From Macrostomum lignano (taxonomy: Eukaryota), in NCBI GenBank assembly GCA_002269645.1, contig NIVC01005082.1:1-26780 (forward strand): a DNA stretch of 26,780 nt. Direction: 5' to 3'. Shown piece by piece: positions 1 through 26,780 of this stretch. The position numbers and the translations under genes were made by a program. Every line of letters starts with the position of its first letter. The first letter of the stretch is position 1. The notes below the pieces were generated by a model. That model ran no database searches. It worked only from the letters and a program-made list of their open reading frames with translations, and was not told the origin of the DNA.

Positions 1-105
1 TGCGACACAAAATAAGACTATCAAATTATTTGGTAGCCCTGAAAAAGGGCCGTTTTATCATTCAGGTACAATTACTGTACAGTGTACACTAGCCGCGAAG
101 AGTGT

Positions 106-300
106 TCAGGCAGGGTAGTAGTGGCTCACCCAGTACAGGAAGTTGCCGAAGTGTTACCCGTCCGGGTACAGCCAGCGCCACAGGTATTCCTGCAGGTGGG
201 ACTCGAACAACGCGTCGCTTGTCCGTGCATGGCCTGCAGCTTTGCCTTGGAGTGCGCCCAGGTGCCCCGATGGTATTGGTGTGGACGGTTGGGTCCTGGT
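106..300 (-). mobile_element. Merlin / IS1595-like (ISXO2-type) DDE transposase C-terminal relic, pseudogenized
   Basis: Correcting two 1-bp deletions, the minus strand reads VHTNTI(E)GTWAHSKAKLQAMH(G)TSDALFESHLQEYLWRWLYPDG*HFGNFLYWVSHYYPA*. HTNTIEGxW...L.E..WR is the IS1595/Merlin C-terminal signature. Internal TAA at 154-156, terminal TGA at 106-108. Confidence 0.7.
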
Positions 301-1574
301 CATTGGCCTGACCTCAGCCAGTGGGACAATCGTCGTTGGAGCAGATAGGCGACCTGCCATGCTGAAAAAGGGGTAAAAAATAATATAAGACTTTGAAAAT
401 AATTAAACGAACGAAACTGAAGGATAGCCGACCTTTTCTATATTGTGATAATAAATAACCCTTTTTTGAATTGTATAAAGTAACCTTTTTGGCAAATAAT
501 TTGGTTCATTTTTTTATTTAGCAATACCAATAGGCCATAAAGGCCTACTCTTTCTAATCAAAAATTTATACATGCCAAAATTTGTTTAAATGCTTTATTA
601 TAGGCTTGAAAACCTAGAAAGCTTTAAATTTACACCAAAAAATAAGTTTTTTTCATATTTTTTCTACTTCATATTTTCTTAGAAGTGATACATACCAATT
701 GTATATGCCTATTTTTGGCATGCAGGCCAATGTATGCCCAAAAATTTGGGCATATATTATATGATCCAGAGTATAGTATAAGTATGATTATTTTTCTACA
801 AAATTTTGTTTCCTAATATAACAATATATTCTGTTAAACTAGTATCCTGGCTGCCATTAACATTGATACAATGTTTTTTAATGGTTAAAAAAAGGTTGCT
901 ATTGGATATTAAAATAACATCATTTTTAGCCTGCCTTTTTAAGATTTTTAAACGTTAGTGGCCAATGTTGGGATTAGATTAAAAAATAACCATCTACCAA
1001 CCTTTTTGCTACATGCCCCACTGACTACTTATAGACATAGCTCTATAGTTTCAGAAAATAATTAACAGAAGAGTCTTTTGCTTTTTTTAGCAAAAGAGAT
1101 TGATTGTAATTCCATTTATTTAAAGTGGCATAGTAAACTTATGGTTACGTCAATAATAGATGTTATAAAATGAAACTGGGCTTGTATAAATTTAGTAATA
1201 TGTTTTGATGTATAATTTATTAAAAGCTAGCATACTTTAGTAGGAAAGATTAAAAGACTACATGAACACTTATAGAAAGATGCGCTCTTATGCGGGTGGG
1301 CCTGTAAAATTGAACCTCATTAATTAGTTGACCAAATTTTTGCAATAGCTAAAATAAGCTCATATGGGAAAGCAGTGCTTGCAAACATGCTTACTAAAAG
1401 TGGTTAAGAGTTTAATTGTTTTTGTTGTCAAATAAAAATTTGAGTTTCTGACCATTTCTGATAAAAGAATTAAAATGTTTTAATAGATAATTTTTGTATG
1501 AGCATAGCAAGTACAATATATTTTACAAGCTATTTGATATGGATGGTGGATGCTGTTTATGTTATATAAGTGGC

Positions 1575-3714
1575 TTAGTCTGCATACATTTCACATAGAA
1601 GATCCCCATCCTCCTCTGTGTCCATGTCACCGTTCTCAGCAGAATCACTCGAAATTGTCAAACCTTCAGCAGCTGCGGAACCAGTCTGGTTTCCAACAAG
1701 CAGCAACCTTTCACTCTGCTTTCTGATTCAAGTGCCTGCGTGCCTTAGATGCTCGCCAACTGCGGCTTCAGCCATTATTTTTGTGCAGTCACGGAAGACG
1801 CCAGAAGCTGCAGCTAAAAATACAAGATTTTGAAATATATTTTAAGCAGTACCTTTGAAGGATACAACTGTGGAAGGCTAATCCTATTTAACTCAGCTCT
1901 GTCAACTCAATTTAATACAGCTATATAATGTTGCAAATTGCACCAAACTGATTTATAGGAATCTTACTTACCATGGATAATAGGAAATAGACCAAGAGAG
2001 TCGAAGCTTCTCTTTGCGGCTCCTCGGCGAGTAGCCCCTTGCAGGCTAAACTGTGCTGCAAGCTGTCACAAAATGTTGGAAATCAGGTAATTTAGCCTCT
2101 TGCCCCCCAGAGAGCAAAATCGAACAATCTGAAAATGGATGATGGGGAATTATCTGCTGATTATACTGACTTTTATTACATGTGTGTAGTGCGTAATATC
2201 TAATTCAGGGCCTATATAAATTATTTTTTGCAGTATAAATGTAAGACTGTTCTCTGTTATTAGCGTTACTACTTTAATCAGTAATAAGTATCGACATCGA
2301 GTGACGTCCTTTGTTCACTCACTGTGGCTTTTTCGGCCTTCTTATCTCCCTTCACAGCCAAAATCTAGCTCTCAAGGGCTGCAAAGTCACTGAATGGCAA
2401 TGCTTCAAATAGCTGACGGTAGTCACAGCTGTCGGTGTTGTTCTCGTGTGGATTAGTTAGATGAGCCATTGTCTTGTTCTCCAGATCTGTTAATGCAGCT
2501 GTCACTGATGTATGCTAAGCCCAAACTACATCTGTGCAGTAGAATGATACAGTATATTATATAGAATTAGTAGCATATTGCATTATTGCAGTTCAGCATA
2601 AGAAGTCGAAATCAAGTAAGAAAGTACAAGTATATATTTACTTTGATTCAGGGGTTGCAGAGCTAGATTTTTTTAAGAGGGGGGAGGGCATTTTTCTTTT
2701 TAATCAAGGATTTTTTTTCTCTTTCAATTGAATAATTAGGCTTAGGGACTTTAATTTTAATGCTAAATTCACATGTAGTCACTCTCAAGCTGCTTAATAG
2801 CTGCTGTGAGCTTGTCTACTTTAGCGCACAAATTAGACGCAGAGACGCTATCATTTGGCTGCATTTGTCTAAACGCAAGAACGTTGGGCTCCCTGTTATG
2901 AGCTGCCGGTGTTGATGCGACAGTCAGTATAGGTGTGCCAAAAATGTTGGTCCCAGTAGCTGCCAACATGCTGGAATGATCAGCCGCTGCTGCTGCTCCT
3001 GTCAACTTGGAAGTTTGCGATTGCACTGGCATCTCTGGTGATGGTGAATTTCTGATTGGCAGAATCGGTGGTGGAAAGCTTTCCTTTTGCTGTTGTTTCC
3101 TGCGACTTTGAGTCGTGTCATCAGGCCCATGATCCGTCCGTCTGTCTCATCGATGAAGCATGCTACTGGCTGCCGAGACTGTGGAGCATCAGAGTCACTA
3201 GTCTCTATAGTGCCTCTCCTTGCGAATCGCTTTCAAAATTCAAAAGCTTCCTTCTGAGAGTCTGCAGCAGTGAAGATCAAAGAGAAATGATTTTATTTGG
3301 CACTTTAGCCTTCATTCATTTTGATTTGATACAATGTATTGTGATAATTCATGCCCACGTATTAAGACACATGCTTTATGTGTCTTAGAATTGGGATTGG
3401 GTATTGTATATTTACAAAGTTAACGTTAAAGCTAAACACAGGCGTTTAAAAACTGCAATATAATTCCTCAAATATTGAAAATAATACTTATATTAACTAT
3501 TCAATTGAATTTTCTTATCCCAAGATCTAACTATATCCACTGTCTTGAATGACCACTTGTCACTCGTCATCTTCTTGCCATTTATGGCTTGCTTATAGTC
3601 CAATACTGGTGGCCAGCAAACAAGATTTGGGTTCTTGAACCACGTGTTTAGAGTCAACTCTATGCTGCCATTGTCAAAAATGACCAGCACAAATTTTTTC
3701 TCCAAATGGGACAT
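1575..3714 (-). pseudogene. Multi-exon DUF4806/BEN-like domain gene, disrupted by several in-frame stops
   Basis: Approximate exons: 3714-3519 (FVLVIFDNGSIELTLNTWF..VCWPP), 3261-2773 (S/P-rich linker with stops and a frameshift), ~2500-2323 (LPFSDFAALES*IL), 2128-1972 (SLGGKRLNYLISNIL*QLAAQFSLQG..KRSFDSLGLFPIIH), 1813-1575 (AASGVFRDCTKIMAEAAVGEHLRHAGT*IRK...). The last two introns have GT-AG ends with matching phases (0 and 1). The first donor and the exon 3 acceptor are unclear. Confidence 0.55.
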
Positions 3715-4751
3715 TTTCGGATGATTAGGCTATTCTTAATTCTATGAAATAAAATGGAGCTAGGATGACACCTAAAGCACTTAAACTAGATTTGATGAGA
3801 ATATTCTAATGACAAAAGACAAAGTCAATATGATTAAGACAGCTAGCTGAAGCAAAATATACAAACAGTTTTCTTTTTACTCATTTACCACAGTTTGCAT
3901 ATTGGCTTTAAAGTATATTTCCATCAGTCTTCACTCCTCAGTCAACCAATTAAAATGAAGCAGCCCCCGGAATGAGGCCTCACCGCCTGGCCAATTGAAC
4001 ATTGCATATTGGACAAGCAAAATTGTACTGAAATTGTATCTTTCAGCAGCGGCAGATCCAGGGTTTTTGCTTAGGGGCTGAGAATTACATGTGAGGGTGC
4101 CGCCTTTTGTCAGGCAGGGGCGCCTGGCGCCGCATCAGGTTAGAACCTATGCGATGAACGCCATTTTTAGCGCTTGTAGCACCTTTTGGCGCCTGTGACC
4201 CTTTCTAGGACAACGGAGCAACCTCCTGTGACAGGGCGCCCACCTAAGACAGGCGCTGTTCGATTTGGGTGGCGGGGGACAACTGGGCGGGTCAATAGGC
4301 CATGTGAATGAAGTGAGCAGTCGCTCAAACTCTTTCGTTCCTTCGTTATATGAGTGATTCGCTCATCGTATTGCAGATCATTGTTGGTAAAATAAATAGG
4401 ACAAAGTCATATCTTCTTTAAGGAACCAAAATTTTTTTTAGAAACTATAAAGCTAAGACTTGGGGCTTGGGGAAACCTGGAGAGCCAGTAATTTATGACG
4501 GGGAGACATTTAGTTTCTTTTACTTCCTTAGTCGTTTATCCTTTCATTGACAGGAAGGAAGAAAAATTACTTGTAAAATTTGTAACCTTCTTATGCCATG
4601 ACTTCAATCTATCTGATTTCATCAAACCATCCAGACTTCATAGATCCCATGTCGTCATATTTTATCTGCCATGTTTCTATTTCTTCTGATTTGAAATGCC
4701 TATTAGTGCTTATTATGCGCTATGATATTTTTTCCAATTTTTATATAGCTT

Positions 4752-4760
4752 TTATTCCAC
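4752..4760 (+). repeat. Left target-site duplication TTATTCCAC
   Basis: Identical 9-mer at 7374-7382, directly after the (TGT)n tail. Confidence 0.85.
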
Positions 4761-6145
4761 GGCGCGTTGACTATGGCGGCGAAGAACTCGCGCATCTCGT
4801 TCCTGCGCTCATCCGGAGTGTCGCCTGCCAGGTTGAGCACGATGCGACGCTTTCGCCCCGTCAGAGTGTTGATGACGGACCAGGCCACGCGCTCTCTGGC
4901 ATTGGGCCCTGCGGCAGAGACGGCTTGGATGGCGTCATCGACAGCGGACTGCTGCCGCTGCAGGTAGACAGCCGCCAGAGCCTCCTCCGCCTCGCGAGTT
5001 TGCCGCCCACTCAGACGGAGCCTCTCCAGATCTTCCCTCGCTTCGTCGATCGCGGGTCGTCCTGCCACCGGCTGCCCGCGCTGGGCCGGTCGCATCAGCG
5101 GGACTGCTTGCTCCGCAGCGGCTCGAACTGCAGCGCTCACCTCCGCGTACTCGGCTCCTCCACGCTTGTCGCCCAGCGCAGTGACAAAGGCACCGGCAAA
5201 GCGACGTCGCGTCTCGGCGTCCCTGAGCGCGCGGTAGTAGCGCCGCGGTGGCCGCTTTGGCGGACGGTAGAGCGGGTCCCGAAGCCGAAGGTCGCAGATG
5301 AGCAGCCGATGGTCGGACCGCAGAGCCAGCGGCGTAATGGTGCGGCAGTTGGTGACGCGGCGGCTCACACGAAAGCGCACAAGCACGTGGTCGAGCTGTG
5401 CCAGCCTCCGCGTAGCGTTCCGGCCGCGCGCGTTCCGCCGCCTCCGCTTGCAGCCCACGAAGGTCGCGAGCCTGCCCGGTGACTTGCGGAATCTGGTGTT
5501 GGCCGACACCATGTCCTGTCTCTCCAGGAAGTCCTCTAGCGCTCCGGTGTTGCCGTTCTCGCGCGCTGTTACGAACAGCGATCGCTCGGACCTACGCAGA
5601 ACTGCGTTCAGGTCTCCGAGAATGACCACTGTGTCACGTTGCGCCATCTCCTCCACCCGCACCGAGAGTTGCTCGAAGAAGGCCTGAGCCTCATCGGAGC
5701 GGGTAGCAGGCGGCGCGTACGCGCAGAACAGGCGGGCGTTCCGGCCGCGAAGCCGGACGTCGACCCGAAGCAGCCGAGAAGACAGGGCGACGCAGCGACA
5801 GCTCTGCTGCAGCCTCGGTCCGATCAGCGCTTCAACTCCTCCACGGCCTCGCTCATCCGCTGAGGTGTACCAGAGTGTCCACCCGGCGCCCAGGTCCTCA
5901 CAGTGAAGTCCGGGGTCGGCTCTGATAGACACCTCCTGTAGTGCGATGACATCACAGCTGAGGTCGAGCGCTAGCCTCGCCAGCAGCCCTCTCCGCCATG
6001 TGGCCTTGAGAGTGCGGCAGTTCAGCGTCCCGACCCGAAGCGTGCCCTCTGGTACGGCTGGGGCTCGATGCTGGTGAGCCTCATGGTCCCCGGCGCCACC
6101 CGGAAGATCCAATTGGGCCAGCGCAGCAGCAGCTCGGCGGGCGGC
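4761..6145 (-). CDS. Retrotransposon APE endonuclease + linker (inverted segment, stop-free)
   Basis: Within ORF 4703..6511: VGTLNCRTL, DVIALQEV, CAYAP, VILGDLNA, QLDHVLV, SDHRLL. The element ends at ...REFFAAIVNAP; the WNKSYIK tail is host flank, and the first ~120 aa of that ORF are antisense to the RT. Confidence 0.88.
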
Positions 6146-6146
6146 G

Positions 6147-7328
6147 CCTGAGCAGAACGGATTCCGGCCCCATCGCGGCACAGTGACGCAGATCCTGGCT
6201 CTTCGGCGAGTCATCGAGGAGGCGCGCATCCGCCAGTTGACCCTGATCCTGATCTTCGTCGATTTCAGGAAGGCCTTCGACTCGGTCGTGAGGGACGTGC
6301 TCCCAGAGGTGCTCCGTGCGTACAACGTGCCAGAGCTGCTGATTTCTGCTGTCATGGCGCTGTACCACGGCACGACGGCTGCTGTCTCAACACCGGACGG
6401 CCTATCGGATTTCTTCGAGACATCCTCCGGGGTGCTCCAGGGAGATACGCTAGCGCCGTTCCTATTTATTCTGGTGCTTGACTGGGTGCTACGGACTGCT
6501 CTGCCTTCCAACGACGACGGCTTCCTGCTGCGGCGACGCGTGGGTCGACGCCAAGCGGAGAGACGGCTCAGCGTGCTTGGCTACGCCGATGACCTCGCCC
6601 TGCTGTCCTCGACCGTCGAGGGCGCCCAACGACAGCTGGATAGGCTGGTTGCCGTTGCGGCGAGCGTCGGCCTGGGGGTCAACACGCAGAAGACCGTCGT
6701 GCTATGCGTGCCGGACGACACCGAGGCTGCAATCTTCTGCCGAGGCGCTGACGGACAGGCGAGTGAGCTTCCAAGATGTCAGCAGTTCGTCTACCTCGGC
6801 GGTCTGGTTCCCGACGTCCGCGAGGATCTGCGGCGTCGCCGAGGACTTGCCTGGGCTGCCTTTCGTTCTATAAGGTCATTCCTGCAGTCCGAGGCCCTAC
6901 CGGACCGCCAGAGGGCGGCGCTGTTCCAGGCGGTGATCGAGACCGTCCTGTTATACAACGCCGAGACCTGGACGCTGACAGACTCGCTCGAGGCTCAAGT
7001 CGCGCACGCTGGCCTGCTGCGCGCCGCCTTCAAAATCGGCAACGAGCGAGTCACCAACACGGCGCTCTATCATCGCGCCGGCCTGGCCCGTCCTAGCGAT
7101 TTGCTGCGCCGTCGGCGACTCCAGCTGGCAGGCCACGTCATCCGCGCCGAGGCCTACTGTCCGGAGCCGGTGCAGGAGGTGCTGCTACTTACGTTGCAGG
7201 CACCCTACCGGCGGGGACAGGCGAGGACTCGGCGCTACGTCGACTGTCTGCTGGCTGACGCCGGCGCCCCGGACTCTGCCGGCGGTGCGGCCTTTGTTCG
7301 CGCCCAAGCTTCGAAGCGCGCCATCTGA
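6147..7328 (+). CDS. Retrotransposon reverse transcriptase (N-terminal part missing) + C-terminal domain
   Basis: PEQNGFRPHRGTVTQILALRRVIEE, FVDFRKAFDSV, GVLQGDTLAPFLF, LGYADDLALL, FVYLGG, VLLYNAETWTL, RRRLQLAGH. Open frame to TGA at 7328. Confidence 0.92.
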   Translation, partial: PEQNGFRPHRGTVTQILALRRVIEEARIRQLTLILIFVDFRKAFDSVVRDVLPEVLRAYNVPELLISAVMALYHGTTAAVSTPDGLSDFFETSSGVLQGDTLAPFLFILVLDWVLRTALPSNDDGFLLRRRVGRRQAERRLSVLGYADDLALLSSTVEGAQRQLDRLVAVAASVGLGVNTQKTVVLCVPDDTEAAIFCRGADGQASELPRCQQFVYLGGLVPDVREDLRRRRGLAWAAFRSIRSFLQSEALPDRQRAALFQAVIETVLLYNAETWTLTDSLEAQVAHAGLLRAAFKIGNERVTNTALYHRAGLARPSDLLRRRRLQLAGHVIRAEAYCPEPVQEVLLLTLQAPYRRGQARTRRYVDCLLADAGAPDSAGGAAFVRAQASKRAI

Positions 7329-7373
7329 CGCTGCTTTTGCGAACTGACAGCGTACTCTGTTCTGTTGTTGTTG

Positions 7374-7382
7374 TTATTCCAC
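7374..7382 (+). repeat. Right target-site duplication TTATTCCAC
   Basis: Identical to 4752-4760. Confidence 0.85.
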
Positions 7383-8927: not shown

Positions 8928-10106
8928 ATGCCGCCGCTAGCAAGTACGCAGGCCCTTCGTAGGCACCCGACAATGCACGCAGCAGCAGCGGTTGCTTCAG
9001 CCGCCTCTGTTACTTCTGAGGCCATGCCAGCTGCTAGCGGTTCTCCATTATCTAGCGAGCAGTGGCCTAGTAGTTACCAGGGTAACCATAGCAACAGCGG
9101 CAGCAGTTCCCCAGCCTCCATCAGCCTGCTGCACCAGCAGTCTCGCAAGCGCCGTCGCACCGGCGGCCCGCTATCGTCGCCAACAGCTAGTAATCATAAT
9201 TCAAAGCTGCCATTTCATCTGCCACCGATGGTAAAGAAAGAGAAATCGATCAGTCTAGTTGCCATGGAGACGGCTAGTACAAGCGAGTCTGTGTCGGATG
9301 CTTCTATGCCGAATGGCAGCGGCGCAGACCAGAGCAGTCACGCCGGCGCCAACGGCAAAGAGCTGTTTGTACTGTCGCTGGCTGTGATTCTGTCGCTAAC
9401 TGGAGGCGGCGGCCAAGCACCCTGGGATGAGTTCTCCGCTGCTAGCCAGCCGTTGCCAGGCGTTGCCAAGGACGCCGCTATGCTGCCGCAGCTGCCTCAT
9501 GACCTGGCTCTAATTGGCGGCCTAAGCAGCAAATCCGACCGCATCTCCGATTGGCTGGCCGCTAATCCTCTGGCTCTGCGTCAGCAGCAGGCGGCTTATC
9601 CCAGCACCATTGTGGGCTGGTCGCCGTCAACTTCGACTAACTCAATGTGGAACGATCAGGACACGGTTGCTTTGGCATTCTATCAACAGCCGGATTCGAA
9701 AGATTTAATGCTAGGAGGCGGTGCAGCTGCCGGAGTGTCTGTGTTACCGAAACCGCTGACTACTATGAGTAGTAGCAGCAACGGCAGTCAGAGTCCGCCG
9801 CAATCGACCACATCTTCATCTCTGTGGTGGCAGGCTGGTTTAGAATCCGACGCTAACAATGGAGACGAGCATCTGAGCGAGTCGGAGTTGCAAATCAATG
9901 CCGAATTGGATCAGCTGTTTCCGCTTGGCGAGTTGGATCAGCTGGGATTTGATCCCGATAGTTTTATGGGGTTGTTGAACGAACCTGCCGTTGACATTTC
10001 GGGCGCGGCTGGGACGGACAGCGAAGGTCAAATGATGTCAGCAATGCTGATGCCGCCAAAGTCTGAGGACGGCGACCAATCGGAAGGATTTAAAACTGAG
10101 GAGTGT
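8928..10106 (+). CDS. cnc: CNC/Nrf-family bZIP transcription factor, exon 1 (393 codons; S/A-rich and acidic regions)
   Basis: Long GC-rich ORF ending ...KTEEC at a GTAAGT donor (10107, phase 0). Contains an SRKRRR basic cluster, a hydrophobic LFVLSLAVILSLTG segment and an acidic ELDQLFPLGELD region. Upstream exons cannot be excluded. The symbol is family-level only. Confidence 0.75.
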
Positions 10107-10140
10107 GTAAGTTGGTTTGGGGTGCCACTTTTAGGGTAGG

Positions 10141-10530
10141 GGCCATATATGGGGCTTTCAGAGTCCCTTTTTATGGACCATATGGGGCTTTGAGAGTCCC
10201 TTTTTATGGACCATATGGAGCTTTGAGAGTCCCTTTTTATGGACCATATGGGGCTTTCAGAGTCCCTTTTTATGGACCATATGGGGCTTTCAGAGTCCCT
10301 TTTTATGGACCATATGGGGTTTTCAGAGTCCCTTTTTATGGACCATATGGGGCTTTCAGAGTCCCTTTTTATGGACCATATGGGGTTTTCAGAGTCCCTT
10401 TTTATGGACCATATGGGGCTTTCAGAGTCCCTTTTTATGGACCATATGGGGCTTTCAGAGTCCCTTTTTATGGACCATATTGAGCTCTCAGTCCCATATG
10501 GAACCACATAGTTTTGGACCATATGGGGTT
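10141..10530. repeat. 33-bp minisatellite, 10 near-identical units plus degenerate ends, in the CNC intron
   Basis: Unit GGACCATATGGGGCTTTCAGAGTCCCTTTTTAT; seen as the 11-aa periodicity (WSIKRDSESPI) of the overlapping ORFs. Confidence 0.95.
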
Positions 10531-10784
10531 GCAGCGCACTTTTAAAGCCTGGTTGAAGAACTGAGTGAGTCAGACTGTAGGCTACCGACAAAATACCCAG
10601 TATTTAAGTGTGCACTGTATCGAATATTTGAGTAGAAAAGACGCTGCTCGTCTTGCTTGTTATGGACCAAGCCTTGAGCATGGGAGTCCTTTATAAAAAA
10701 TGAAAACAGAAATGTCTGACTCGCTGTTAAGTCTTTTTGAACGAGTTACCTAAACAATTTTTTCAACGGGGCATATAGAATTTT

Positions 10785-11015
10785 CTGATGTACCAGCGGC
10801 CCAGGCTCGATTCCAAGTGCAGTCACGTTAATTTGGGGGCTAAATTGTAATCTCGGCTTGGCTCTGCTCGTGCAATTAAAGCCCTTCCCGATTAAAACGG
10901 TACCCAGACCAAAAATCTTCTCGTCGTTTTAGAATCGTTTAGAATCGACTCCCCTGAATGCTTAGGGGAGTCGGCCGAATGGGCAGTAATACCTCTCGCC
11001 GGTTGTGCGACAATG
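10785..11015 (+). mobile_element. Truncated, internally deleted copy of tRNA-derived SINE family B
   Basis: CTGATGTACCAGCGGCCCAGGCTCGATTCCAAGTGCAGTCACGTTAATTTGGGGGCT...CTCGGCTTGGCTCTGCTC and CAGTAATACCTCTCGCCGGTTGTG match the reverse complement of 22877-23249. Confidence 0.75.
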
Positions 11016-11880: not shown

Positions 11881-12335
11881 GTGGTTGCTAGGGACACGCA
11901 AGCTATGCCACAATGCAGTCTGGTTGCTAGGGACACGAAATCTGTACCCCAATGCAATGGTTGCTAGGGACGCGCAAGCTATACCCCAATGCAGTCTGGT
12001 TGCTAGGGACTGAAACCTGTACCCCAATGCAGTATGGTTGCTAGGGACACAACCTGTCCCCCAGTGCAGTATGGTTGCTAGGGACACAACCTACCCCCCC
12101 CCCAGTGCAGTATGGTTGCTAGGGACACAACCTGTCCCCCAGTGCAGTATGATTGCTAGGGAACAACCTGTACCCCAGTGCAGTATGATTGCTAGGGAAC
12201 AACCTGTATCCCAGTGCAGTATTGTTGCTAGGGCACAACCTGTACCCCAGTGCAGTCTGGTTGCTAGGGCCAGAACCCAAACCCCAATTACCCCAATGCA
12301 GTCTGGTTGCTAGGGGCGCAACCTGTACCCCAATA
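11881..12335. repeat. 36-41-bp tandem array, 12 units, immediately 3' of the CNC stop codon
   Basis: Consensus near GGTTGCTAGGGACACAACCTGTACCCCAGTGCAGTAT. Degenerate cores at ~11790, 11831 and 11859, and a perfect core inside the CDS at 11721-11738. Confidence 0.92.
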
Positions 12336-17326: not shown

Positions 17327-18069
17327 TTCGAATGATTTTTTGTCTTCTTGTTTAGTCGCAGAATTGCTCTGTTGGTTCTAGCGAATTTATTCGTTCTTAT
17401 TTTACTTGTACATGGGGATTTTGTAACGAACTGTATCATTTTATATCATTCTAATCTGGAAGAAATCAAAAAATCGTACGAAATTATCTTGTTTTTTTAG
17501 AATATCCAGATCACTCCAGCTCCTAAATTGGTATTTATTGCATGCATTTGGATAAAACATATCAAAAATAATTAAATAAGGTTGAATAATTCTTAAGCTG
17601 AAAAATTTTGCTTAATAAAAAAAATAGCTATCATGAAAATTTCAACGTTTCCAATTTATGAGGTTGAAGCTTTAGCCTGCAGGAATGGATATCTGCGGTA
17701 AAAACTCACTGAAAAAAGCATTAGCTAGGCGCAGAACAAGGACAACTAAAGCAACGTATATACAGGACGCAACACTCACGTTTCATGGGAAAGGTTCTGA
17801 AGCTTCATGGGCCACTTTTTGCCAAAAAAATGCACTAGCTATGGAGATAGAAAGTTTTGATTTTTTCAGCACAAAAATTGTTTTTGCTTTCGACAGATCC
17901 AATGTTCATCGTTTGATATGTTAATTGTGCCTTTCTTATAGCTCTATTGATATTCATAAAGCTTTTTGTTCAAAAAATTAACTAGGATTATGTGTTAATT
18001 TTTTATTCACCGTATATGTACATTTCCTGTATCTAAAAATCATAAAAATGCATGGCAAAGCTCGAGTCT

Positions 18070-18160: not shown

Positions 18161-19835
18161 AACTACCGACGGGGGGCAGAGCGCCGCGATTAGGCTGCGA
18201 GGCCCCTATCGCAACCCCAAGCTAAAAGCAGAAAGGCGTTAGCCTTGGGGCTGCGCCCACCCCTCGCCGGCAGCAGAAGCGCTGGCAAGAGTGGCGGCGT
18301 CTGCGATCTTCATCCGCCCAGAATCTCGAACGAATGCGCGCAGGTCACGGATCCGGTCCGGAGTGGTGAGCTCGTCCAGCCTTAGCGGGTGACCGAGGTG
18401 ACGCCTTCGCGCCTCGCTGAAGTGCGGGCAGAAAGTGACGTGGTTGCGTCGAGGTTTCCTCCTCTAGATCACAGAATGGGCAGATAGGGGAGCAACCACT
18501 TTGCAGTGAAATATGTCTCTGGAAGAAGCCATGGCCAGTGATGACCATGCACATCTCCCTGATGTCAGTTTTACTTAAGGAGATTAGATATTCGGATACT
18601 TTCCGGTTTATGACAGGCATTGCAATTCGTGTTTGCCGATATTCGGAGCAGCTGTCCCAGTGGACCTGGTGCTGGCGATTCAGCCAATCTTGAATGGCGC
18701 GATTGACTGATGACTTCGGAGAAGGTAACTTGACTGGGCGTTGGCTCCACCGGGGTGCAACCCGTTTAACGAGTTGATCCACAAGCTCATTGCCGAGGAT
18801 GTTGCTATGGCCTGGTGTTCAGATAACATTGATCCTGTTGAGAATCGCTAGGGTCTGCAAGCTTTTGAAGCAGTCTGAAACTGATTTGGTTGAGAGCTTG
18901 ATGGAAGACAAGGCCTTAGTAGCAGCCTGGCTGTCAGAATAAAAATAAATGTCAAAGCTGCTGATACCAGCTTTGTGCAAATTTGCTCAGCGCACTGGTT
19001 GATGGCTCCAACTTCGGATTGAAAAACCGAGACATTCTCACCAAGATGAAGACTTTCTTGTAAGATCGCCTCACCCTAGTGGAAAATGGCGATGCCCGCG
19101 CCCGCGAGACCGTCACACAGGGATCCGTCAGTGAAGCAGTGAATACCCTGGCTTCTCCTGCCCACGTCCAGCGGGTGGCTCCCTCGCGGCGGAAGGGTTG
19201 AACTTGAAGCCCTTCCTGAGGATGAAAGTGGGGGTTTGCAGTCCACCTCGTCTAAATTGAGGTGGATGTGTTGAAGATCGCGACGGATGTAGTCTAGATG
19301 TGGGATGAGAGTCTTCTCGGGCATGAAGCCCGAGGGGGTGTTAGCAATAAATTTATCACAACTGAGAAGCGTGGCACCCTTCATCGCCTCAGCTCTAATG
19401 AACAAATGCAGCGGAGGCATGCTGAGGATGGTGTTAAGGCCCTCGTAAGGGGTGGATGGATAGGCACCGGTGATGGCACGGCAGATGTACCCTGGAGCTG
19501 GTACAGCCGGTCCCGCACAGTCTTCAACTCCAACGCACTGGACCAGATAACACATGCGTAGGTAATACTGGGTCGAATGATGCCAGTGTAGATCCACCTG
19601 ACCGTCTTGGGAGATTGTCCCCAGGTAGGCCCAACGTGCTTGGTTAAGTCCAACGCAGATCGTGAGTGAGCGTCACACCTAGATATTTTGTTTCCTTGAC
19701 TAGGGGATGTCCTTACCATAGATGGTGAGGTTCCGCATGCTCCACTTCCGCTTCCTGGTGAAGATAATGGCCATCGTCTTAGCAGTGCTAATGGTTAGGC
19801 CGTGCCGGGTAGCCCAGGCTTGCGCCTTATCGGCG
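18161..19835 (-). mobile_element. 5'-truncated, decayed non-LTR retrotransposon with RT tail, RNase H and C-terminal Cys knuckle (R1/Loa/I-group-like)
   Basis: [69 protein letters not shown], RNase H CFTDGSL...FQSEV...YSDSQAA...[34 protein letters not shown]. Several stops and frameshifts. 13-bp TSD GAGCCGTGCCATT at 18148-18160 and 19836-19848. Confidence 0.88.
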
Positions 19836-20019: not shown

Positions 20020-21088
20020 ACTAGCTTCAAGGCCAAGCGCTCTCCTATTAATGATGAAGTGGAAGCAGAACCGAAAACTGTCGACATTGATTATATAGTC
20101 ACGCAAGAATTCAACGAGCGGCCCATCTAGAGATAATTAGCATTTAACAATACATCGTATTTTTGGCTTCATGAAGTGAAAAAAGTAGCTAATGTTTTTT
20201 CAGACAGCTTTAATAACATAAGTTTGGAATCAATATACACTTGCAAAAATACGTACATTTATGTATACGCAATCAATGTTTTTCCTGCCTACCCTGAGCT
20301 TTAGCGGCGGCTCTTCAAGTGAACACTTAAAAGGAAAAGAGCTGAAAAATGAGAAAAGGGAGGTTGCTGAAGTGTACCGAGCGGGAAGTGCTACCCTTCT
20401 TGGGAAACTAGGAAAAATTAGTCAAGAACCAGAGAGTTTTGCCCAATTGACGCCTAAACACCACCTGTCGGCACTCTGTGGCTGTTTTTACGTGTATACA
20501 TCGGAGTTGTCTATTTTATCGCGTTGTGTCAAGCGCTTTAATTGTTTGTGCCGCCTTCTGAGTCAGGTTTACCCCACCTCTACAGAAGAGTAGGAATGAA
20601 GACGCTTTCCATCTCCGTGTCAGCTTCTCAACTTCCTAGCCAAGTAGCTCCTACTCTCGATCTTTCTCCCAAAGCCACTCGACTCATCCCGTCACCCTTA
20701 GTTACTGGTCCAACAACTCAAGCTAAAGTTACTTCTGTAGAAAATATTTCTTTTGTTTTTATTCCCAAGTTAGTCCCAGCCGCTGTCAAAAATAGGAACA
20801 GGAAACATAAAGCAGGCGTGCATCTTCAGACAGCAAATGCAGCGCTTGAGAAAGGCTGGCTTATTGATTCGCTGAGAGGGTTGCGTCTTCATTGTGGTCC
20901 AAGCATTTTGACTATTTAGCTGACGCCTCTCACGGAAATATGGACGCCACTCTCTCAAGGAGGAGGAGAAACTTTTCAATTGGTATAAAAAAGTAAATTT
21001 AACAGCAAGAGACGAAACAGATAAGATTACGAAAAATCTTAAAATTTTTATTCCATTCCGAACTACTCGTAGAACTTTTTTAGCTGAA

Positions 21089-22793
21089 ATGATTTCGCAA
21101 CTAATAATACTTTGTTTGCTATCCACCGGTAAGATACCTAATCCATTTCGCAACTCACTTTGACCCAAATATCCCTGAACTCCCAATTAATTGCTATTTC
21201 AGCCACCTGCGTGACTGCCAGCCAAGCTCCTGAGCAAGAGTACTACCTGGTCGATGAGCCCGTTACCATCAACGCCTCGGTGAGCAGCGAAGTGATCAAT
21301 GTGACCGGGGTGGCTTCCGAGATCGACTGCGTGACGAGGTGCCTGTCGAGAGGCTGCTCAGTGGCGGTGGCTCACGAGAGCATCGGGCTCTGCCAAATGG
21401 CCATGGTGTACGAAGGCCACTCGTCCGGGAGTCGCGTGCAGAGGCTGCTGGGCTCGGAGGCCGGAGCCAGGGTCTGGACGTTCGACGCACCGCTAATTCA
21501 CCTAAACTTCAGCATTGAGTTTCTCAGTAAGGACTTCTGCAAAATTCCAAAGTTTCGTTAGATCTGCGAATATTTATCTCTCTATGCTAAACTCCATCTT
21601 CCAGACTCCAGCACCGGTAGAAACGGCACCATCCAGCAGCTGCTGATCGACACCACCCACTGCTACCGGATTGAAGCTGCCGGTGCCAGCGGGAGTCCCG
21701 GGGCTCGACAACCGAGCGGTCGAGGAGCTGTCATGGCAGGCAACTTCAGCCTGACTGCCGGCACCCTGCTGACCATTGTTGTCGGACAGCAGGGGGGCCC
21801 CGCTAGCGGTGATGGCGGCGGAGGTGGCGGCGGAGGCAGCTTTGTGTACACTGTCAACGCCTCTGGCAACCCGCTGCTGCTGCTAGCTGCTGGCGGAGGC
21901 GGCGGTGGCTGCTACTATGACGCTGGTAAGTGCCAGAGCAGGGTCTCGTCTGACTGCTGAATCACCTGTTTGAGATGAGAGCCTTCATGCGAACGCGAGC
22001 ATTGGTTATCAAAGAAGAATGAAGCGGATTAAAAAAAATTAAAGAGATAATTAACAATTATTTTCTTGATTAGGACTCATTATTTGACATCATCAGGGTT
22101 GAATTATTTAACGAACGAGTGACTGAGCAAATTTAAAGTATGTACAGCTAGAGGAGAATGAGCAAAAGCAATGACTATGGCCCTAACCTTTGATTGATGG
22201 ATTGGTTGATTGATTGATTGACTTATTGATTGATTGGTTATTTACAAGCTTACTACTTACTATTAGTAGTCAGTTATCAAAGTTAAAGCTCCTGTCGTGT
22301 TTCAAAATTCAGGTGCTGATGGCTCAGGAGACGAAAGAGGCACGAACTCAGTTGCTGGGGATTCTGATTACTCTGGCTACGGCGGCAGCAACGGTCAGGC
22401 GGCTTCAGCAATTCTGATAATAATGACGAAGACTACTACCCCGGCGGCTGCGGCGCCGGCTGGTTTGGCAAGAATACCAACGCTAAAGCCACGCAGCACG
22501 ACGGCGACCACGGTGGAAGCTTGGCTGACGGCTGGGTCGGCGGAGCCGTTAACACCAACTATAACGGCGGAACCGGAGGGTTCGGAGGCGGCGGCGGTGG
22601 CGGCAGCACCCCCACGAACGACAATGGCGGCGGCGGAGGCGGCGGCTTCAGCGGTGGCGGCGCCGCTGGCAATCACGGTGGCGGAGGCGGCGGCTCCTTC
22701 TGCGGCGGCCGCGGCTGCGCCGCCATCAGCGGCGGCAACACCGGCAGCGACCAGGGCTTCGTCAAGGTGCAGTCGGTCCTGGATTGCGATTGA
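21089..22793 (+). CDS. Predicted secreted protein, copy 1: signal peptide + PAN/apple + ALK/LTK-type glycine-rich domain (~388 aa)
   Basis: Exons 21089-21128, 21203-21526, 21605-21925, 22313-22793, all with GT-AG phase-1 introns. MISQLIILCLLSTA; PAN core CVTRCLSRGC...C; CYRIEAAGASG..GRGAVMAGNFSL...IVVGQQG..GGGGGGGGSFV...LLLAAGGGGG; GCGAGW; GGFGGGGGG; GGGGFSGG; GGGGGSF; GFVKV. One missing G at ~22398 shifts the frame (assembly error or true lesion). Confidence 0.8.
22190..22237. repeat. (TTGA)n imperfect microsatellite in intron 3 of copy 1
   Basis: TTGATTGATGGATTGGTTGATTGATTGATTGAC... Confidence 0.8.
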
Positions 22794-22876: not shown

Positions 22877-23249
22877 GTTAGTTAGAGGCAGGCGGTTGTG
22901 TGTAGCCTGGCGCACTTTAGGCGCGACATTGGCACACAACCGGCGAGAGCCATTACTGGCGCCCATTCCGCCGAATCCCCTGAGCAGGCACACAAGCCCG
23001 CGGATACGTACGCAGTCATACGCACAGGCACACACTCACACAGGAGTTTACAGCGGCCCTGACTTTATTTATCGTTAGGCATGTACACTTCACTGTGCCT
23101 TGGGGGTTGGGCCTCAAAGACGTTAATTTCAGGAGCAGAGCCAAGCCGAGATTCCAATTCAGCCCCAAATTAATGTGACTGCACTTGGTATCGAGCCTGG
23201 GCTGCTGGCACATCAGAGCGCCACGTTGGACCGCTGGGCTTCAGCCCCC
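22877..23249 (-). mobile_element. tRNA-derived SINE (family B), near full length
   Basis: Head GGGGCTGAAGCCCAGCGG (A-box-like) and GGCTCGATACC (B-box-like); short (CTAA)n-like tail; homologous partial copy at 10785-11015. Confidence 0.7.
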
Positions 23250-24574
23250 TACCCGTGACCTGACACAACAATTCTATATAGCACATGCATACGGTTATTA
23301 TTACTACTAGTACATTTTCTTCTTCGTAAACATCATGTACTTTCTGCTAGAAATTGCCTTCATAGTTGCTCCTGTTCTTTTTGCTTTTTTTGCTGTATTT
23401 TTCTTTCACAAAGTAAAAAAGGTTTTTCAATCTGTGATATTTAATTTGGGCCCTTTGGGCCAGTAAGCAACTTCTCTCGGACCTCCCCATGAGGGTGTAA
23501 TTCGAATTTGTAATTTTGCTGTTACACCCTATCGCTCAGCGTGGTGATTACGTAATATACGCCCCGCAGTGTAAAGTGGAAGTTGTGCAACATGCAATTA
23601 GGGAGATTCAAGAGAAGTTGTTTACTTGTGCAAGTTTTAAATGTTGCCATTTCTCTAAGCTCTGCATCATTAACAACCCGATTTGTTCGATTTCGATCGC
23701 AGCTTGTGCACTATGCAGTTCTTTATAACAAATAAACATTGCACAAAAGAATTTTAACACCTGATTCTTATTGTTATTTGAAAATCGTTGTACACGCCGC
23801 AGAGGTGTTCCATTTTAATTATTTAAGCTAAAGTTAAATGTTTGCGGTTAACAATCTTCTCTGTCAAGTAATGTCGCCATGGGCCATACTACCGAACATC
23901 GGTTAAGGAAGCAACTTCTTCGGTTCTAGGAAAGTCTGTTTCTCAAAAAACCTGTGCTTAATGTGCTTAAAAAGCAGTACAGAAGTGTTTTGAGTGAGTA
24001 TTGTCAGCTCAACTAAAAGGGTCTGAAAGTCAGCAGAAAATTGAAAGGGGAGGAGAGAAGCCTCCTACCCTGCTGACGCTGAGCACCTGTCCTCCTGCCC
24101 CTCTCGTCCATTTAGTTGCCAAGTGCCTTTGTTGCCAAGGCGATCTTCTAAGTTATTAACCCGGCCCCCGCCAAAAGAGGAGGAAGATGCTTCTAACTTC
24201 TCAACACCCAACAAGAGTTTCTACTCCTGATCATTGTTCTTTGCTCAGCAAGACTCGCCTGCCGCCTTACTGGTCTTTGCTTTTGTTTTAAGAGGCTCCC
24301 AAATTCACTGGCAAAAACTGAGACAAAAGCTGAAAGCTGCCAGGGAAGCCTGACAGGATTGAGAGGCTGGCGTATTGACGAAGGGTAAAAATAGCGATGA
24401 AGAGGTTGTTTACCTGCCTTCCTTGTGGTATACTTAGGCTATTTAGCAAAATTCTCGCACCACAGAAATTGTGAGGCTCTCCTAATAAGCAGGGGTTCAA
24501 GTCTTTTTTCAAGGCGATACAAATCAAGACTAACCCTGATTTTATAATATTCAATCCTAGTTTTCTTTACTGAA

Positions 24575-26780
24575 ATGATTTCGCAAATAGTACTACTTAG
24601 CCTGCTCTCCACCGGTAAGATACCTAATCCATTCCGCAACTCACTTTGACCCAAATATCCCTGAACTCCCAATTAATTTGCTGATTTCAGCCACCTGCGT
24701 GACTGCCAGCCAAGCTCCTGAGCAAGAGTACTACCTGGTCGATGAGCCCGTTACCATCAACGCCTCGGTGAGCAGCGAAGTGATCAATGTGACCGGGGTG
24801 GCTTCCGAGATCGACTGCGTGACGAGGTGCCTGTCGAGAGGCTGCTCGGTGGCGGTGGCTCACGAGAGCATCGGGCTCTGCCAGATGGCCATGGTGTACG
24901 AAGGCCACTCGTCCGGTATTCGCGTGCAGAGGCTGCTGGGCTCGGAGGCCGGAGCCAGGGTCTGGACGTTCGACAAGATAAGCTCGGGACCTCGGGACAA
25001 CAGGACTTTTATAAGTGAGCATTTATTTCTACTCTTTCACTTCGGCTTGTCTGGAAAGTCGAGAAAATGTGTGAAGCAAGCAAGAAAGAAGCAAGCTGTT
25101 GACATGGTGGACAAAGCTCAAGATCCTGACTTTATCGCCAGCCAAAGTAATAAAAGATCGTTGGCACAGTTCCCTAACAGCAGAAGTCGTAAATTTCAGA
25201 CACCGGAACCGGCCGGACCGGCTCCATCCAGCAGCTGCTGATCAACTCCACCGGGTGCTACCGAATTAAAGCTGCCGGTGCCAGCGGCGGCTCCAGCACA
25301 GCCAAATCAGGCGGTCGCGGAGCCGCCATCGCTGGCACCTTCAGCCTGACAGCCGGTATCCTGCTGACCATTGCTGTCGGACAGCAGGGCGGTGCTGGTG
25401 GATCGCTCAGCTGGGGGGGGCTACACAGGAGCTGGCGGAGGCGGAGGCAGCTTCGTGTACACATTTAACACGACTGGTTTGCCAACACTGCTTCTGGCCG
25501 CCGGCGGTGGTGGAGGCGCCTGTTACACTACTAATGGTAATGCTTTTAATGCCTGTTAATCCAATACACTAAAAATGTTCTGTCGGTATGTGTGTGATCG
25601 GGCCTGACAATGATCAAGGTGGAATGCTGAGGCACATGTAACAAAGCTTCTAGTCTAAGAATTCTTGCTAAAAGGGGCTACTTTTCCTGCTGAATCTCTG
25701 ACATGAATAACAATAGAGACTATCAAACATGGTTGAATGTTTTTTTAGATTTTTTCTTTAGCTGCCTAAAACACATTGCAGTACGAGACCCCTTGCTACC
25801 CCGGCCCTGTCCCCCAGCGACCATGAGAGTGAAATGTAGTATTGTTAGTGGTAAATGTTTCATTCGAATTTAAAGAAGTTGGAAAAAACATCGCAATGGG
25901 CCCGTCAACTTAAGCCCATAAAGTGGAGCCTGAGTAACATATGTACACAAATGATACGCCATTATTGTCACAATGCACTAGAAGGAAGCTGGGTGGTTGC
26001 ACTAAAAAGCGACGAAAAATTGGACTACGTAGGTAGAATAAAAAAATTAACATAGAATCCGATTTTTCTGAACGAGAAGCTTTATGAATATCAATAGAGC
26101 AATAAGAAAGGCGCAAATTATCAAAAGACGAACACTGGATCTGCCTCCTATCAAAAGCAATAAACAATTTTTGTGCTGAAAAAATGAAAACTTCCTATCT
26201 CCGCTGTGTATTTTTTTCGGAGGAAACCTGCCTTCAAACATTTTTCAAAAACGAGGTTTCCTGTCCTTCCACTTAAGCCGTCCTTGATCCGTAACCGTAG
26301 CGCCACTAGCTAGGCAGGATCTCCGTAGTCGCAATCCGTAACCGAATTAAGTTTTAGGGTCCTTCTGCTTCGGTTGTCCATCAGTGACTCTAATATCTCG
26401 TAAAATATACCCCTCCATGGTTAATATTTCAGGCGCGCCGCCGGTTCCGGAGGAACATCCGGTACGGCTTCGATACCCGGTGACACTCCATACTACGGCT
26501 ACGGAGGAGCGAACGGTCAGCCCGGATCCAACAACCCCGCTGGAAGGAAAACAGACTCTTACGTCGGTGGCTGCGGCGCGCGGGTGGCTGGGAAAGGCAG
26601 CAAAAACCACCAAGTAACATGTACGATGGAGGTCGAGGCGGCAGTCTGGCTGATGGCTGGATTTGTGACAGCGCTGGGACTGCTGGCGGCTTCGGTGGCG
26701 GCAGCGGAGGAGCTAATTACCCGATGACGAGTCTCAAACGCCGGTGGCGGTGCGGCGGCTACAGCGGCGGCGGTGCCGGC
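24575..26780 (+). CDS. Predicted secreted protein, copy 2: signal peptide + PAN/apple + ALK/LTK-type glycine-rich domain; runs off the window, with several frameshifts
   Basis: Exons 24575-24614, 24691-25014, 25200-25536, 26433->26780, with the same intron positions and phases as copy 1. MISQIVLLSLLSTA; near-identical PAN; CYRIKAAGASGG..GRGAAIAGTFSL..VGQQGG; YGYGGANGQ; VGGCGA; GGSLADGW; GGFGGG. One extra G in the G8 run at 25413-25420 and several small insertions in exon 4. Confidence 0.72.

Follow-up and report, generated by a model that had tools for sequence, protein, structure and literature searches.

Twin-primed insertions of the long interspersed nuclear element (LINE) L1 were reportedly described by Ostertag and Kazazian in 2001. 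The twin-priming model is summarised in PMC2912911 and PMC4245944, and among the young L1 copies of human and chimpanzee ~30% carry a 5′ inversion (PMC2912911). Target-site duplications (TSDs) of L1 inversions measure 10–20 nucleotides (nt) (PMC4245944). In an experiment across LINE clades, 5′ inversions were essentially a matter of human L1 in human cells and depended on both the element and the host, the exception being one 5′-inverted Nimb-2_DR insert in chicken DT40 cells; ZfL2-1 yielded no 5′ inversions, and its overhang of ~5 nt was suggested to be too short for stable pairing with RNA (PMC4245944). RTE retroposons have TSDs of 7–15 bp that begin with a T located ~10 nt downstream of a T stretch, and plant RTEs end in (GTT)n (PMC6007223). 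Here we describe an RTE-like LINE copy at positions 4752 to 7382 of a DNA stretch of 26,780 nt from the flatworm Macrostomum lignano (assembly GCA_002269645.1, contig NIVC01005082.1; from here on, this whole stretch is called the window). Its endonuclease/linker part and its reverse transcriptase (RT) part lie in opposite orientations within a single TSD pair, and the insert is most probably the product of one retrotransposition event that was primed from both sides of one staggered break.

The insert extends from 4761 to 7373 (2613 nt) and has a GC content of 65–67%, compared with 27–37% in the flanks. A sequence-only reading of the window had assigned the endonuclease/linker half to the minus strand and the RT half to the plus strand, both free of stop codons, with a (TGT)n tail behind the RT half and the same 9-mer on either side of the whole unit. 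Each of these points was borne out, at the following positions:

4738–4742, plus strand: T-stretch TTTTT, 10–14 nt upstream of the first TSD base (P-14 to P-10)
4752–4760, plus strand: 5′ copy of the TSD, TTATTCCAC, one of only two copies in the window
4761–6148, minus strand: inverted 5′ arm, 462 codons without a stop, comprising the linker and an apurinic/apyrimidinic-type endonuclease
6146–6149: inversion junction, GCCT assignable to either arm, no filler nucleotides
6146–7328, plus strand: coding part of the direct 3′ arm, RT from 'PEQNGFR' (just past motif 2) to the natural TGA at 7326–7328
7329–7362, plus strand: 3′ untranslated region (UTR), 34 nt, with a possible stem CGCTG...CAGCG directly past the stop codon
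7363–7375, plus strand: (TGT)n / (GTT)n microsatellite tail, the last TT overlapping the start of the TSD
7374–7382, plus strand: 3′ copy of the TSD, TTATTCCAC

Both copies of the 9-mer are on the plus strand. Shuffled sequences gave an expectation of 0.09 copies, and two or more copies occurred in 0 of 100 shuffles. When random pairs of AT-rich window positions were drawn in a Monte Carlo simulation of 200,000 trials, with a slack of ±3 nt at both boundaries, a flanking match of at least 9 nt had a chance probability of P = 8e-4. One TSD pair around the whole composite is among the features of a twin-primed LINE insertion. The first TT of the right copy can be assigned to the tail as well, so that the true duplication may measure 7–9 nt. 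Under the one-insertion reading, the site before insertion would have been CTTTTATTCCACTAATTTCTATGC with a single TTATTCCAC. We found no further copies of the element elsewhere in the window. The 9-mer was also considered as a part of the element or as a preferred target, and this was rejected because the surrounding bases differ among the four matches present in 86 loci. One such occurrence is at positions 2724–2732 of L006, a relative of 65% identity found in a JGI metagenome, 10 nt past its (TTG)n tail; it is probably coincidental, a few chance matches being plausible for one 9-mer searched on both strands of these loci.

Relatives were obtained with both arms joined as query, which yielded full-length proteins of 930–1090 amino acids (aa) encoded on read-archive or metagenome contigs of 3.1–4.3 kb. 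Such contigs and Macrostomum gene models are the only sources from which we know the family. In seven relatives (L001, L002, L004, L005, L006, L007 and L086) the endonuclease/linker and the RT are encoded on one strand. As the relatives are collinear, the inversion is private to the window copy. The two closest among them are L004, with 86–89% nt identity to the window copy, and L086, with 83–84%. Four references span both arms, and their nt identities to the inverted and the direct arm, respectively, were 88.7 and 86.4% (L004), 71.3 and 72.8% (L005), 72.3 and 72.1% (L002), and 67.5 and 68.8% (L001). Since the arms are equally distant from each of the four, they come from one source family, and the concern that the two halves might belong to different families could be set aside. 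A wider metagenome scan recovered 80 loci, the best at 73% protein identity, and in none of those with both domains were the domains on opposite strands. The scan establishes collinearity as the norm; it is of no use for counting inverted copies of the subfamily present in the window.

Six gene-model proteins of M. lignano match parts of the element in sense or antisense at 92–98% identity, in line with the invertebrate host named in the sequence-only reading. Along the RT arm P0017 is 95–96% identical, and for the endonuclease arm P0024 reaches 92%, while P0085, P0086 and P0088 show 93–98% identity over antisense readings of the element. A further model, P0037, was read by eye and keeps the sense order throughout, including the segment that is missing from the window copy, with frameshifts.

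The inverted arm carries an Exo_endo_phos domain (PF03372, E 2e-7 in Pfam) and its translation runs from 'GAARRAAAAL...' to '...FFAAIVNAP'. It corresponds to positions 207–1599 of L086 at 84% nt identity; measured against this relative, the first ~206 nt of the element are missing from the window copy. Homology to the relatives ends at 4761, which is position 1599 of L086 and position 194 of L004. It is thus the 3′-most element coordinate of this arm that adjoins the 5′ TSD. The direct arm has 393 codons without a stop on the plus strand from 6147 up to the TGA. Its RVT_1 match (E 5e-21 in Pfam) begins only at profile position 40 of 205, and the start of the arm equals position 1993 of L086 and position 588 of L004. 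Against the full-length relatives, each arm is aligned in one gap-free tblastn segment, hence neither contains a frameshift. In such GC-rich DNA the antisense frames are open too, for instance a 294-aa open reading frame (ORF) on the plus strand at 4598–5482; the unbroken homology is therefore stronger evidence for intactness than the stop-free frames themselves. The intact state of both arms fits one recent event.

The direct arm ends in TGTTGTTGTTGT at 7363–7374, the sole microsatellite of this kind in the unit. With (TTG)n tails present in L001, L002, L004, L005 and L006, this is the normal 3′ end of the family. In the window copy it lies next to the 3′ TSD and in the orientation of the direct arm, the arrangement expected from twin priming.

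A hairpin is predicted at the same position of the 3′ UTR in six of eight family members. One arm begins within or directly past the stop codon (TGAC...) and the other ends before 'TA/TG + (TTG)n', as at 7326–7362 in the window, 3205–3255 in L001, 1774–1803 in L004 and at the equivalent sites of L006, L008, L009 and L010. The stems differ entirely among the subfamilies (CAGTGCACAC/GTGTGCACTG, CTCCCC/GGGGAG and CGCTG/CAGCG). Depending on the member, 0 to 51 of 200 shuffled sequences folded as well, and the window copy taken alone was not significant. From these predictions, the element looks to possess a conserved stem-loop of the kind that LINE reverse transcriptases recognise.

The breakpoints were placed by comparison with L004 and L086. 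We call X the 3′-most point of the inverted arm, W its 5′-most point and Y the 5′-most point of the direct arm; a slash marks the breakpoint. At X, the window has ...GTCAACGCGCCG/TGGAATAA when written in the sense direction, whereas both L004 and L086 continue as ...GTCAACGCGCCG/CCACCCCC; relatives at this point read ...AACGCGCCG. The G opposite C4760 can be assigned to the element or to the TSD, leaving 1 nt in common. At W, L086 has CGA/GGCGCCGACCGCCG compared with TCA/GGCGCCGCCCGCCG in the window, so that the arm reaches 6148, or 6149 if the A is counted. At Y, L004 has CTGCGG/CCAGAGCAG compared with GGCGGCG/CCTGAGCAG in the window, and homology starts from 6146. The two arms consequently meet at their 5′-most points, with a microhomology of 2 nt that are certain (Gly and Pro codons) and 3–4 nt that are likely. 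This places the left flank at AIVNAP and the 5′ point of the inverted piece at PEQNGFR, just as anticipated from the sequence alone. The same transition is visible at the protein level: the antisense reading of collinear M. lignano copies has 'NPFCSG-RRYGSS' (P0085) where the window has 'NPFCSG-AARRAAAAL', and this 'AARRAAAAL' region is the N-terminal region seen in P0024.

The stretch missing between the arms measures exactly 393 nt with L004 or L086 as reference, and 396–402 nt by the ends of the tblastn segments in L001, L002 and L004–L007. The missing segment encodes RT motifs 0–2 ('...PGGKALGPDEVP...IPKKPGT...HRGI.L.SCAAKLFN...'; in L086 '...PPPPLPNSLSLPPE...KTPGGKALGPDEVPIEALR...IVGIPKKPGTTKLEEHRGICLMSCAAKLFNRLLLTRLQPVLDPFLRY'), in agreement with the earlier observation that the N-terminal RT motifs are lacking.

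Each junction was also inspected for traces of separate insertions. The stretches adjoining 6146 on its left and the tail on its right had no 5-mer or longer word in common, as a private TSD of the direct arm would leave, nor was an (ACA)n, the private tail to be expected of the inverted arm, found at the left end of that arm. Either end of the inverted arm has the hexamer CGGCGC, which was rejected as a private TSD because it is element sequence occurring 14 times in the unit when the reverse complement is included. A private TSD or tail is hence lacking in both arms, and independent insertions, each with its own TSD, did not become apparent.

These results bear on the idea that a collinear copy was inverted and partly deleted after its insertion, or that a 5′-truncated sense copy happens to be adjacent to an unrelated antisense fragment. 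An antisense arm without tail or TSD is no ordinary insertion, and the sense arm lacks a TSD of its own, the only flanking repeat enclosing both arms. A later inversion would need one breakpoint to fall exactly on the boundary between TSD and element at 4760/4761. Moreover, the arms do not differ in their intactness or in their distance from the references. Repeats abound in this genome, which has many copies of the family, and P0017 offers an example of antisense and sense family pieces side by side; even so, we consider either form of such a rearrangement very unlikely.

Hardly more credible is an assembly artefact, in which the assembler joined two family copies or a chimeric long read was incorporated. 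The arms share just 3–4 nt, which makes a repeat-driven misjoin unlikely, and a missed adapter in a read would have left a self-complementary palindrome, which the junction is not. In addition, the identical 9-mer exactly at both element boundaries ties the two flanks to one locus. This has to be set against the high redundancy of the published M. lignano assembly, over half of which consists of repeats (PMC5730564), and against the absence of the junction from the proteins found with the junction-spanning ORF, to which we return below.

The preferred explanation remains twin priming, the geometry of which was proposed in the sequence-only reading and is matched here by one TSD pair, a tail on the direct arm only, collinear relatives and 3–4 nt of microhomology at the junction. 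From this structure we infer the priming itself and the following order of events. The endonuclease would nick the bottom strand just left of TTATTCCAC and free the end ...GGAATAA-3′, which would base-pair with the (UUG)n at the end of the RNA (UUGUU against AATAA, with one G:T) and prime a first complementary DNA (cDNA) that would begin in this tail and extend as far as present position 6146. Before completion of this first cDNA, the top strand would be cut 9 nt downstream, and its 3′ end, ...TTATTCCAC-3′, would prime a second cDNA at '...AACGCGCCG' (X), inside the same RNA or a sister RNA. This second priming site would lie 393 nt upstream of the stop of the first cDNA. The second cDNA would head to the 5′ end of the RNA and stop ~206 nt short of it. 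The 3′ ends of the two cDNAs, ...CAGGC-3′ (Y) and ...GCGCC-3′ (W), might then anneal over GGC(T)/(A)GCC, that is 3–4 nt, and be filled in. The product would consist of the TSD, the inverted endonuclease/linker arm, the direct RT arm, the tail and the second TSD copy, with RT motifs 0–2 lost. A left TSD joined to the 3′-most coordinate of the inverted arm is expected if the 3′ OH of the top strand served as primer. Because its ORF is split, this copy is unable to move again.

A template switch could produce the same final structure including the junction microhomology. In that case the RT, working on the sense RNA, would jump near 6146 onto the 3′ end of an antisense transcript, guided by the 3–4 nt of microhomology, and copy this transcript to its 5′ end; the product would be joined to the top strand by end joining, which the 1-nt match at the left junction suits as well as it suits priming. 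For LINEs of the RTE clade, a switch to other RNAs (U6) is on record (PMC4476161). Long antisense frames are open in the element, and antisense stretches occur in M. lignano gene models, though these are no proof of antisense transcription. What this route requires, however, is an antisense RNA ending exactly at both breakpoints, and we know of no antisense transcript with such ends. Twin priming, in contrast, needs the RNA of the element alone, which is already at the site, and the left junction lies exactly at the TSD end, where the top-strand 3′ OH would sit. We regard a template switch as improbable, if slightly less so than a rearrangement or an artefact.

Several observations weigh against twin priming. 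The microhomology looked for at both junctions was present at ~6146, as stated above; between the TSD end and the internal priming site the complementarity amounts to only 1 nt (C4760 and the G of ...GCGCCG). In ~70% of the 5′-inverted human and chimpanzee L1 copies, 2–5 nt of complementarity exist between TSD and priming site (PMC2912911). A gap of 393 nt means that the first cDNA ended well short of the second priming site. Such a length may exceed the deletion usual in L1 twin priming; it could reflect an early stop of the first cDNA, or two primers acting on two RNA molecules. In a large protein search with the 602-aa ORF that spans the inversion junction, no match crossed the junction and coverage reached at most 79%. 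Finally, this is a single case.

A head-to-head arrangement is also contained in P0017. Residues 387–671 of this model are an antisense reading of the linker and the N-terminal region of the RT (L001 from 2240 down to 1530; L004 from 482 down to 99) and residues 672–1107 a sense reading from L004 position 480 to the end. Its breakpoints differ from those in the window, and its two pieces overlap by ~330 nt or more, with no gap. P0017 may represent either a further 5′-inverted copy or a pair of neighbouring copies that a predicted intron connects. The idea that this RTE-like family undergoes twin priming regularly in Macrostomum, and not just once, is tentative and at present rather doubtful.

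With regard to the element class, the architecture supports an RTE-like assignment: a compact single ORF with the endonuclease followed by the RT, a trinucleotide tail and a TSD of 9 nt. The full-length relative L001 illustrates this organisation. In this contig of 3280 bp, a leader of 78 nt precedes a single ORF at 79–3207 (1042 aa), and the end is (TTG)n. With ~3.3 kb and one ORF of ~1040 aa, the family conforms to the compact RTE plan of ~3.2–3.5 kb with one long ORF and neither RNase H nor an ORF1 of usual size. PF03372 and PF00078 were the only Pfam domains in the window arms and in the full-length relatives of the family. The 3′ UTR is very short and followed by a short-unit microsatellite, as in RTE elements; in L002, L004, L005 and L006 the order is likewise a short UTR, (TTG)n and then unrelated flank. 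The first base of the TSD is a T, which is also repeated in the tail, and the length of the TSD is within the 7–15 bp range of the RTE clade. The TTTTT at 4738–4742 is weakly compatible with the insertion signature related to RTE, in which a T-run lies ~10 nt upstream, as this is one insertion into T-rich DNA with a flank of 41% T.

Outside the family, the nearest proteins have 21–33% identity to a family member; they are unnamed or 'hypothetical' endonuclease–RT proteins of ~870–1010 aa, some of them from strongylid nematodes. Membership in the L1 clade, which would entail a close likeness to L1 ORF2p up to its C-terminal Cys-rich region and a separate ORF1, was considered and rejected, given the weak similarity to ORF2p and the lack of space for ORF1. 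The family profile matched human L1 ORF2p with ~140 bits over ~790 residues, and no human ORF2p match was found past profile position 855 of 1023. RT-only matches of the profile to R2 proteins reached up to ~110 bits. With only 78 nt preceding the ORF of L001, there is no space for ORF1. The assignment as RTE-like and non-L1 in the sequence-only reading therefore stands, by architecture and by the distant similarity to human L1 ORF2p.

The N-terminal ~70 codons appear in L086 as a short ORF at 118–330 that overlaps the main ORF at 309–1700, and they are fused to it in L001. This could be due to a frameshift in that copy, or the short ORF could be an overlapping upstream one of the kind present in C. 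elegans RTE-1.

Retrotransposon sequence is widespread among the M. lignano gene models. The UniRef entries P0017, P0024–P0032, P0037, P0056, P0057 and P0085–P0088 contain long sense or antisense retrotransposon translations, and retrotransposon-bearing 'proteins' of this species are named for host domains such as MUS81, VHS, ERM, Apple, CIA30, AMP-binding and others. The GC-rich element keeps its antisense frames open, and gene predictors took such frames for exons. Inverted copies call for caution in annotation, since each resembles a pair of opposed fragments, and in M. lignano the gene models have absorbed them.

Elsewhere, the window has the look of ordinary animal genome, with a bZIP_Maf gene in plus orientation and, on the minus strand, a gene for an M1 aminopeptidase in several exons. 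At 18345–19719 on the minus strand, ORFs resemble a fragment of an unrelated retroelement with an RNase H-like look; Pfam gave no match there at E ≤ 0.001. A tandem duplication occupies 21076–21915 and 24562–25526, with a spacing of ~3.5 kb and blocks that are 71–99% identical; it comprises an exon for a cysteine-containing domain followed by glycine-rich repeats (GGCGGC-type, 21800–22750 and 26660–26780). There are two minisatellites, one at 10147–10491 (33-nt unit, 10.5 copies, 96% matches) directly past the long ORF at 8928–10139, the other at 11882–12334 (37-nt unit, 10.5 copies) just downstream of the bZIP exon. Two inverted-repeat pairs (10784–10886 with 23116–23217, and 17843–18004 with 26041–26202) have arms of 25–55 nt that are 84–95% complementary and 8–12 kb apart; they look like dispersed copies, in opposite orientation, of two short repeat families.

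Among the described systems, the RTE clade (RTE-1 of C. elegans, BovB, SR2/SR3 of Schistosoma and plant RTEs) shares with the family in the window a size of ~3.3 kb, one ORF for endonuclease and RT, the absence of an ORF1-sized space, a very short 3′ UTR, a trinucleotide tail and a TSD starting with T. The likeness is one of architecture, the nearest proteins outside the family being just 21–33% identical. The inversion itself has its closest counterpart in mammalian twin-primed L1, which has the same single TSD pair, a direct 3′ arm with the tail, an inverted arm whose 3′-most point is at the 5′ TSD, microhomology without filler at the inversion junction and a loss of sequence between the arms. 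In contrast to the window element with its ~3.3 kb, single ORF and (GTT)n-type tail, L1 is a 6-kb element with two ORFs and poly(A), and its TSDs peak at 14–16 nt compared with 9 nt here. The 5′-junction microhomology of just 1 nt, the 393-nt deletion and the flatworm host likewise set the window copy apart from the L1 cases. Moreover, 5′ inversion is a mass phenomenon in young L1 copies, whereas the window element provides one case.

Of 106 papers with a mention of twin priming, the 40 ranked highest deal exclusively with mammalian L1. In the literature searched, largely without subscription journals, there was no report of twin priming in an RTE-type element or in an invertebrate, which agrees with the sequence-only reading, where no documented case in a non-L1 clade and in an invertebrate was known. 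The mechanism is hence already known, and the element type and host are new, on one copy. The Nimb-2_DR insert (PMC4245944) is similar in being a 5′ inversion of a non-L1 LINE with a TSD of intermediate length (peak for Nimb-2_DR ~12 bp), and it shows that such inversions are not strictly confined to L1. It was, however, obtained experimentally with a zebrafish element in vertebrate cells, while the window holds a natural germline copy of another kind of LINE in an invertebrate. The inverted chimeras of small nuclear RNA (snRNA) and L1 (PMC4476161) are comparable as well, since a second primer acts on an RNA of opposite orientation within one TSD. Their second template is a cellular snRNA and their enzyme that of L1, whereas both arms in the window stem from the element. 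These chimeras show that the arms need not share one RNA molecule, which would explain the large gap.

Inversion of the 5′ part is treated as a hallmark of L1 integration, and the window copy suggests that two-ended priming is possible with a very different LINE. It bears on the timing of the second-strand cut and on the shortest overhang that a LINE reverse transcriptase can use, because its 9-nt overhang lies between the ~5 nt of ZfL2-1 and the 10–20 nt of L1. As one case, it is a lead for a genome-wide census and no result at the level of the family. If such a census confirmed many inverted copies, early second-strand cleavage would appear as a general trait of endonuclease-type LINEs, and priming from an overhang of ~9 nt would be general too and no peculiarity of L1 in mammalian cells.

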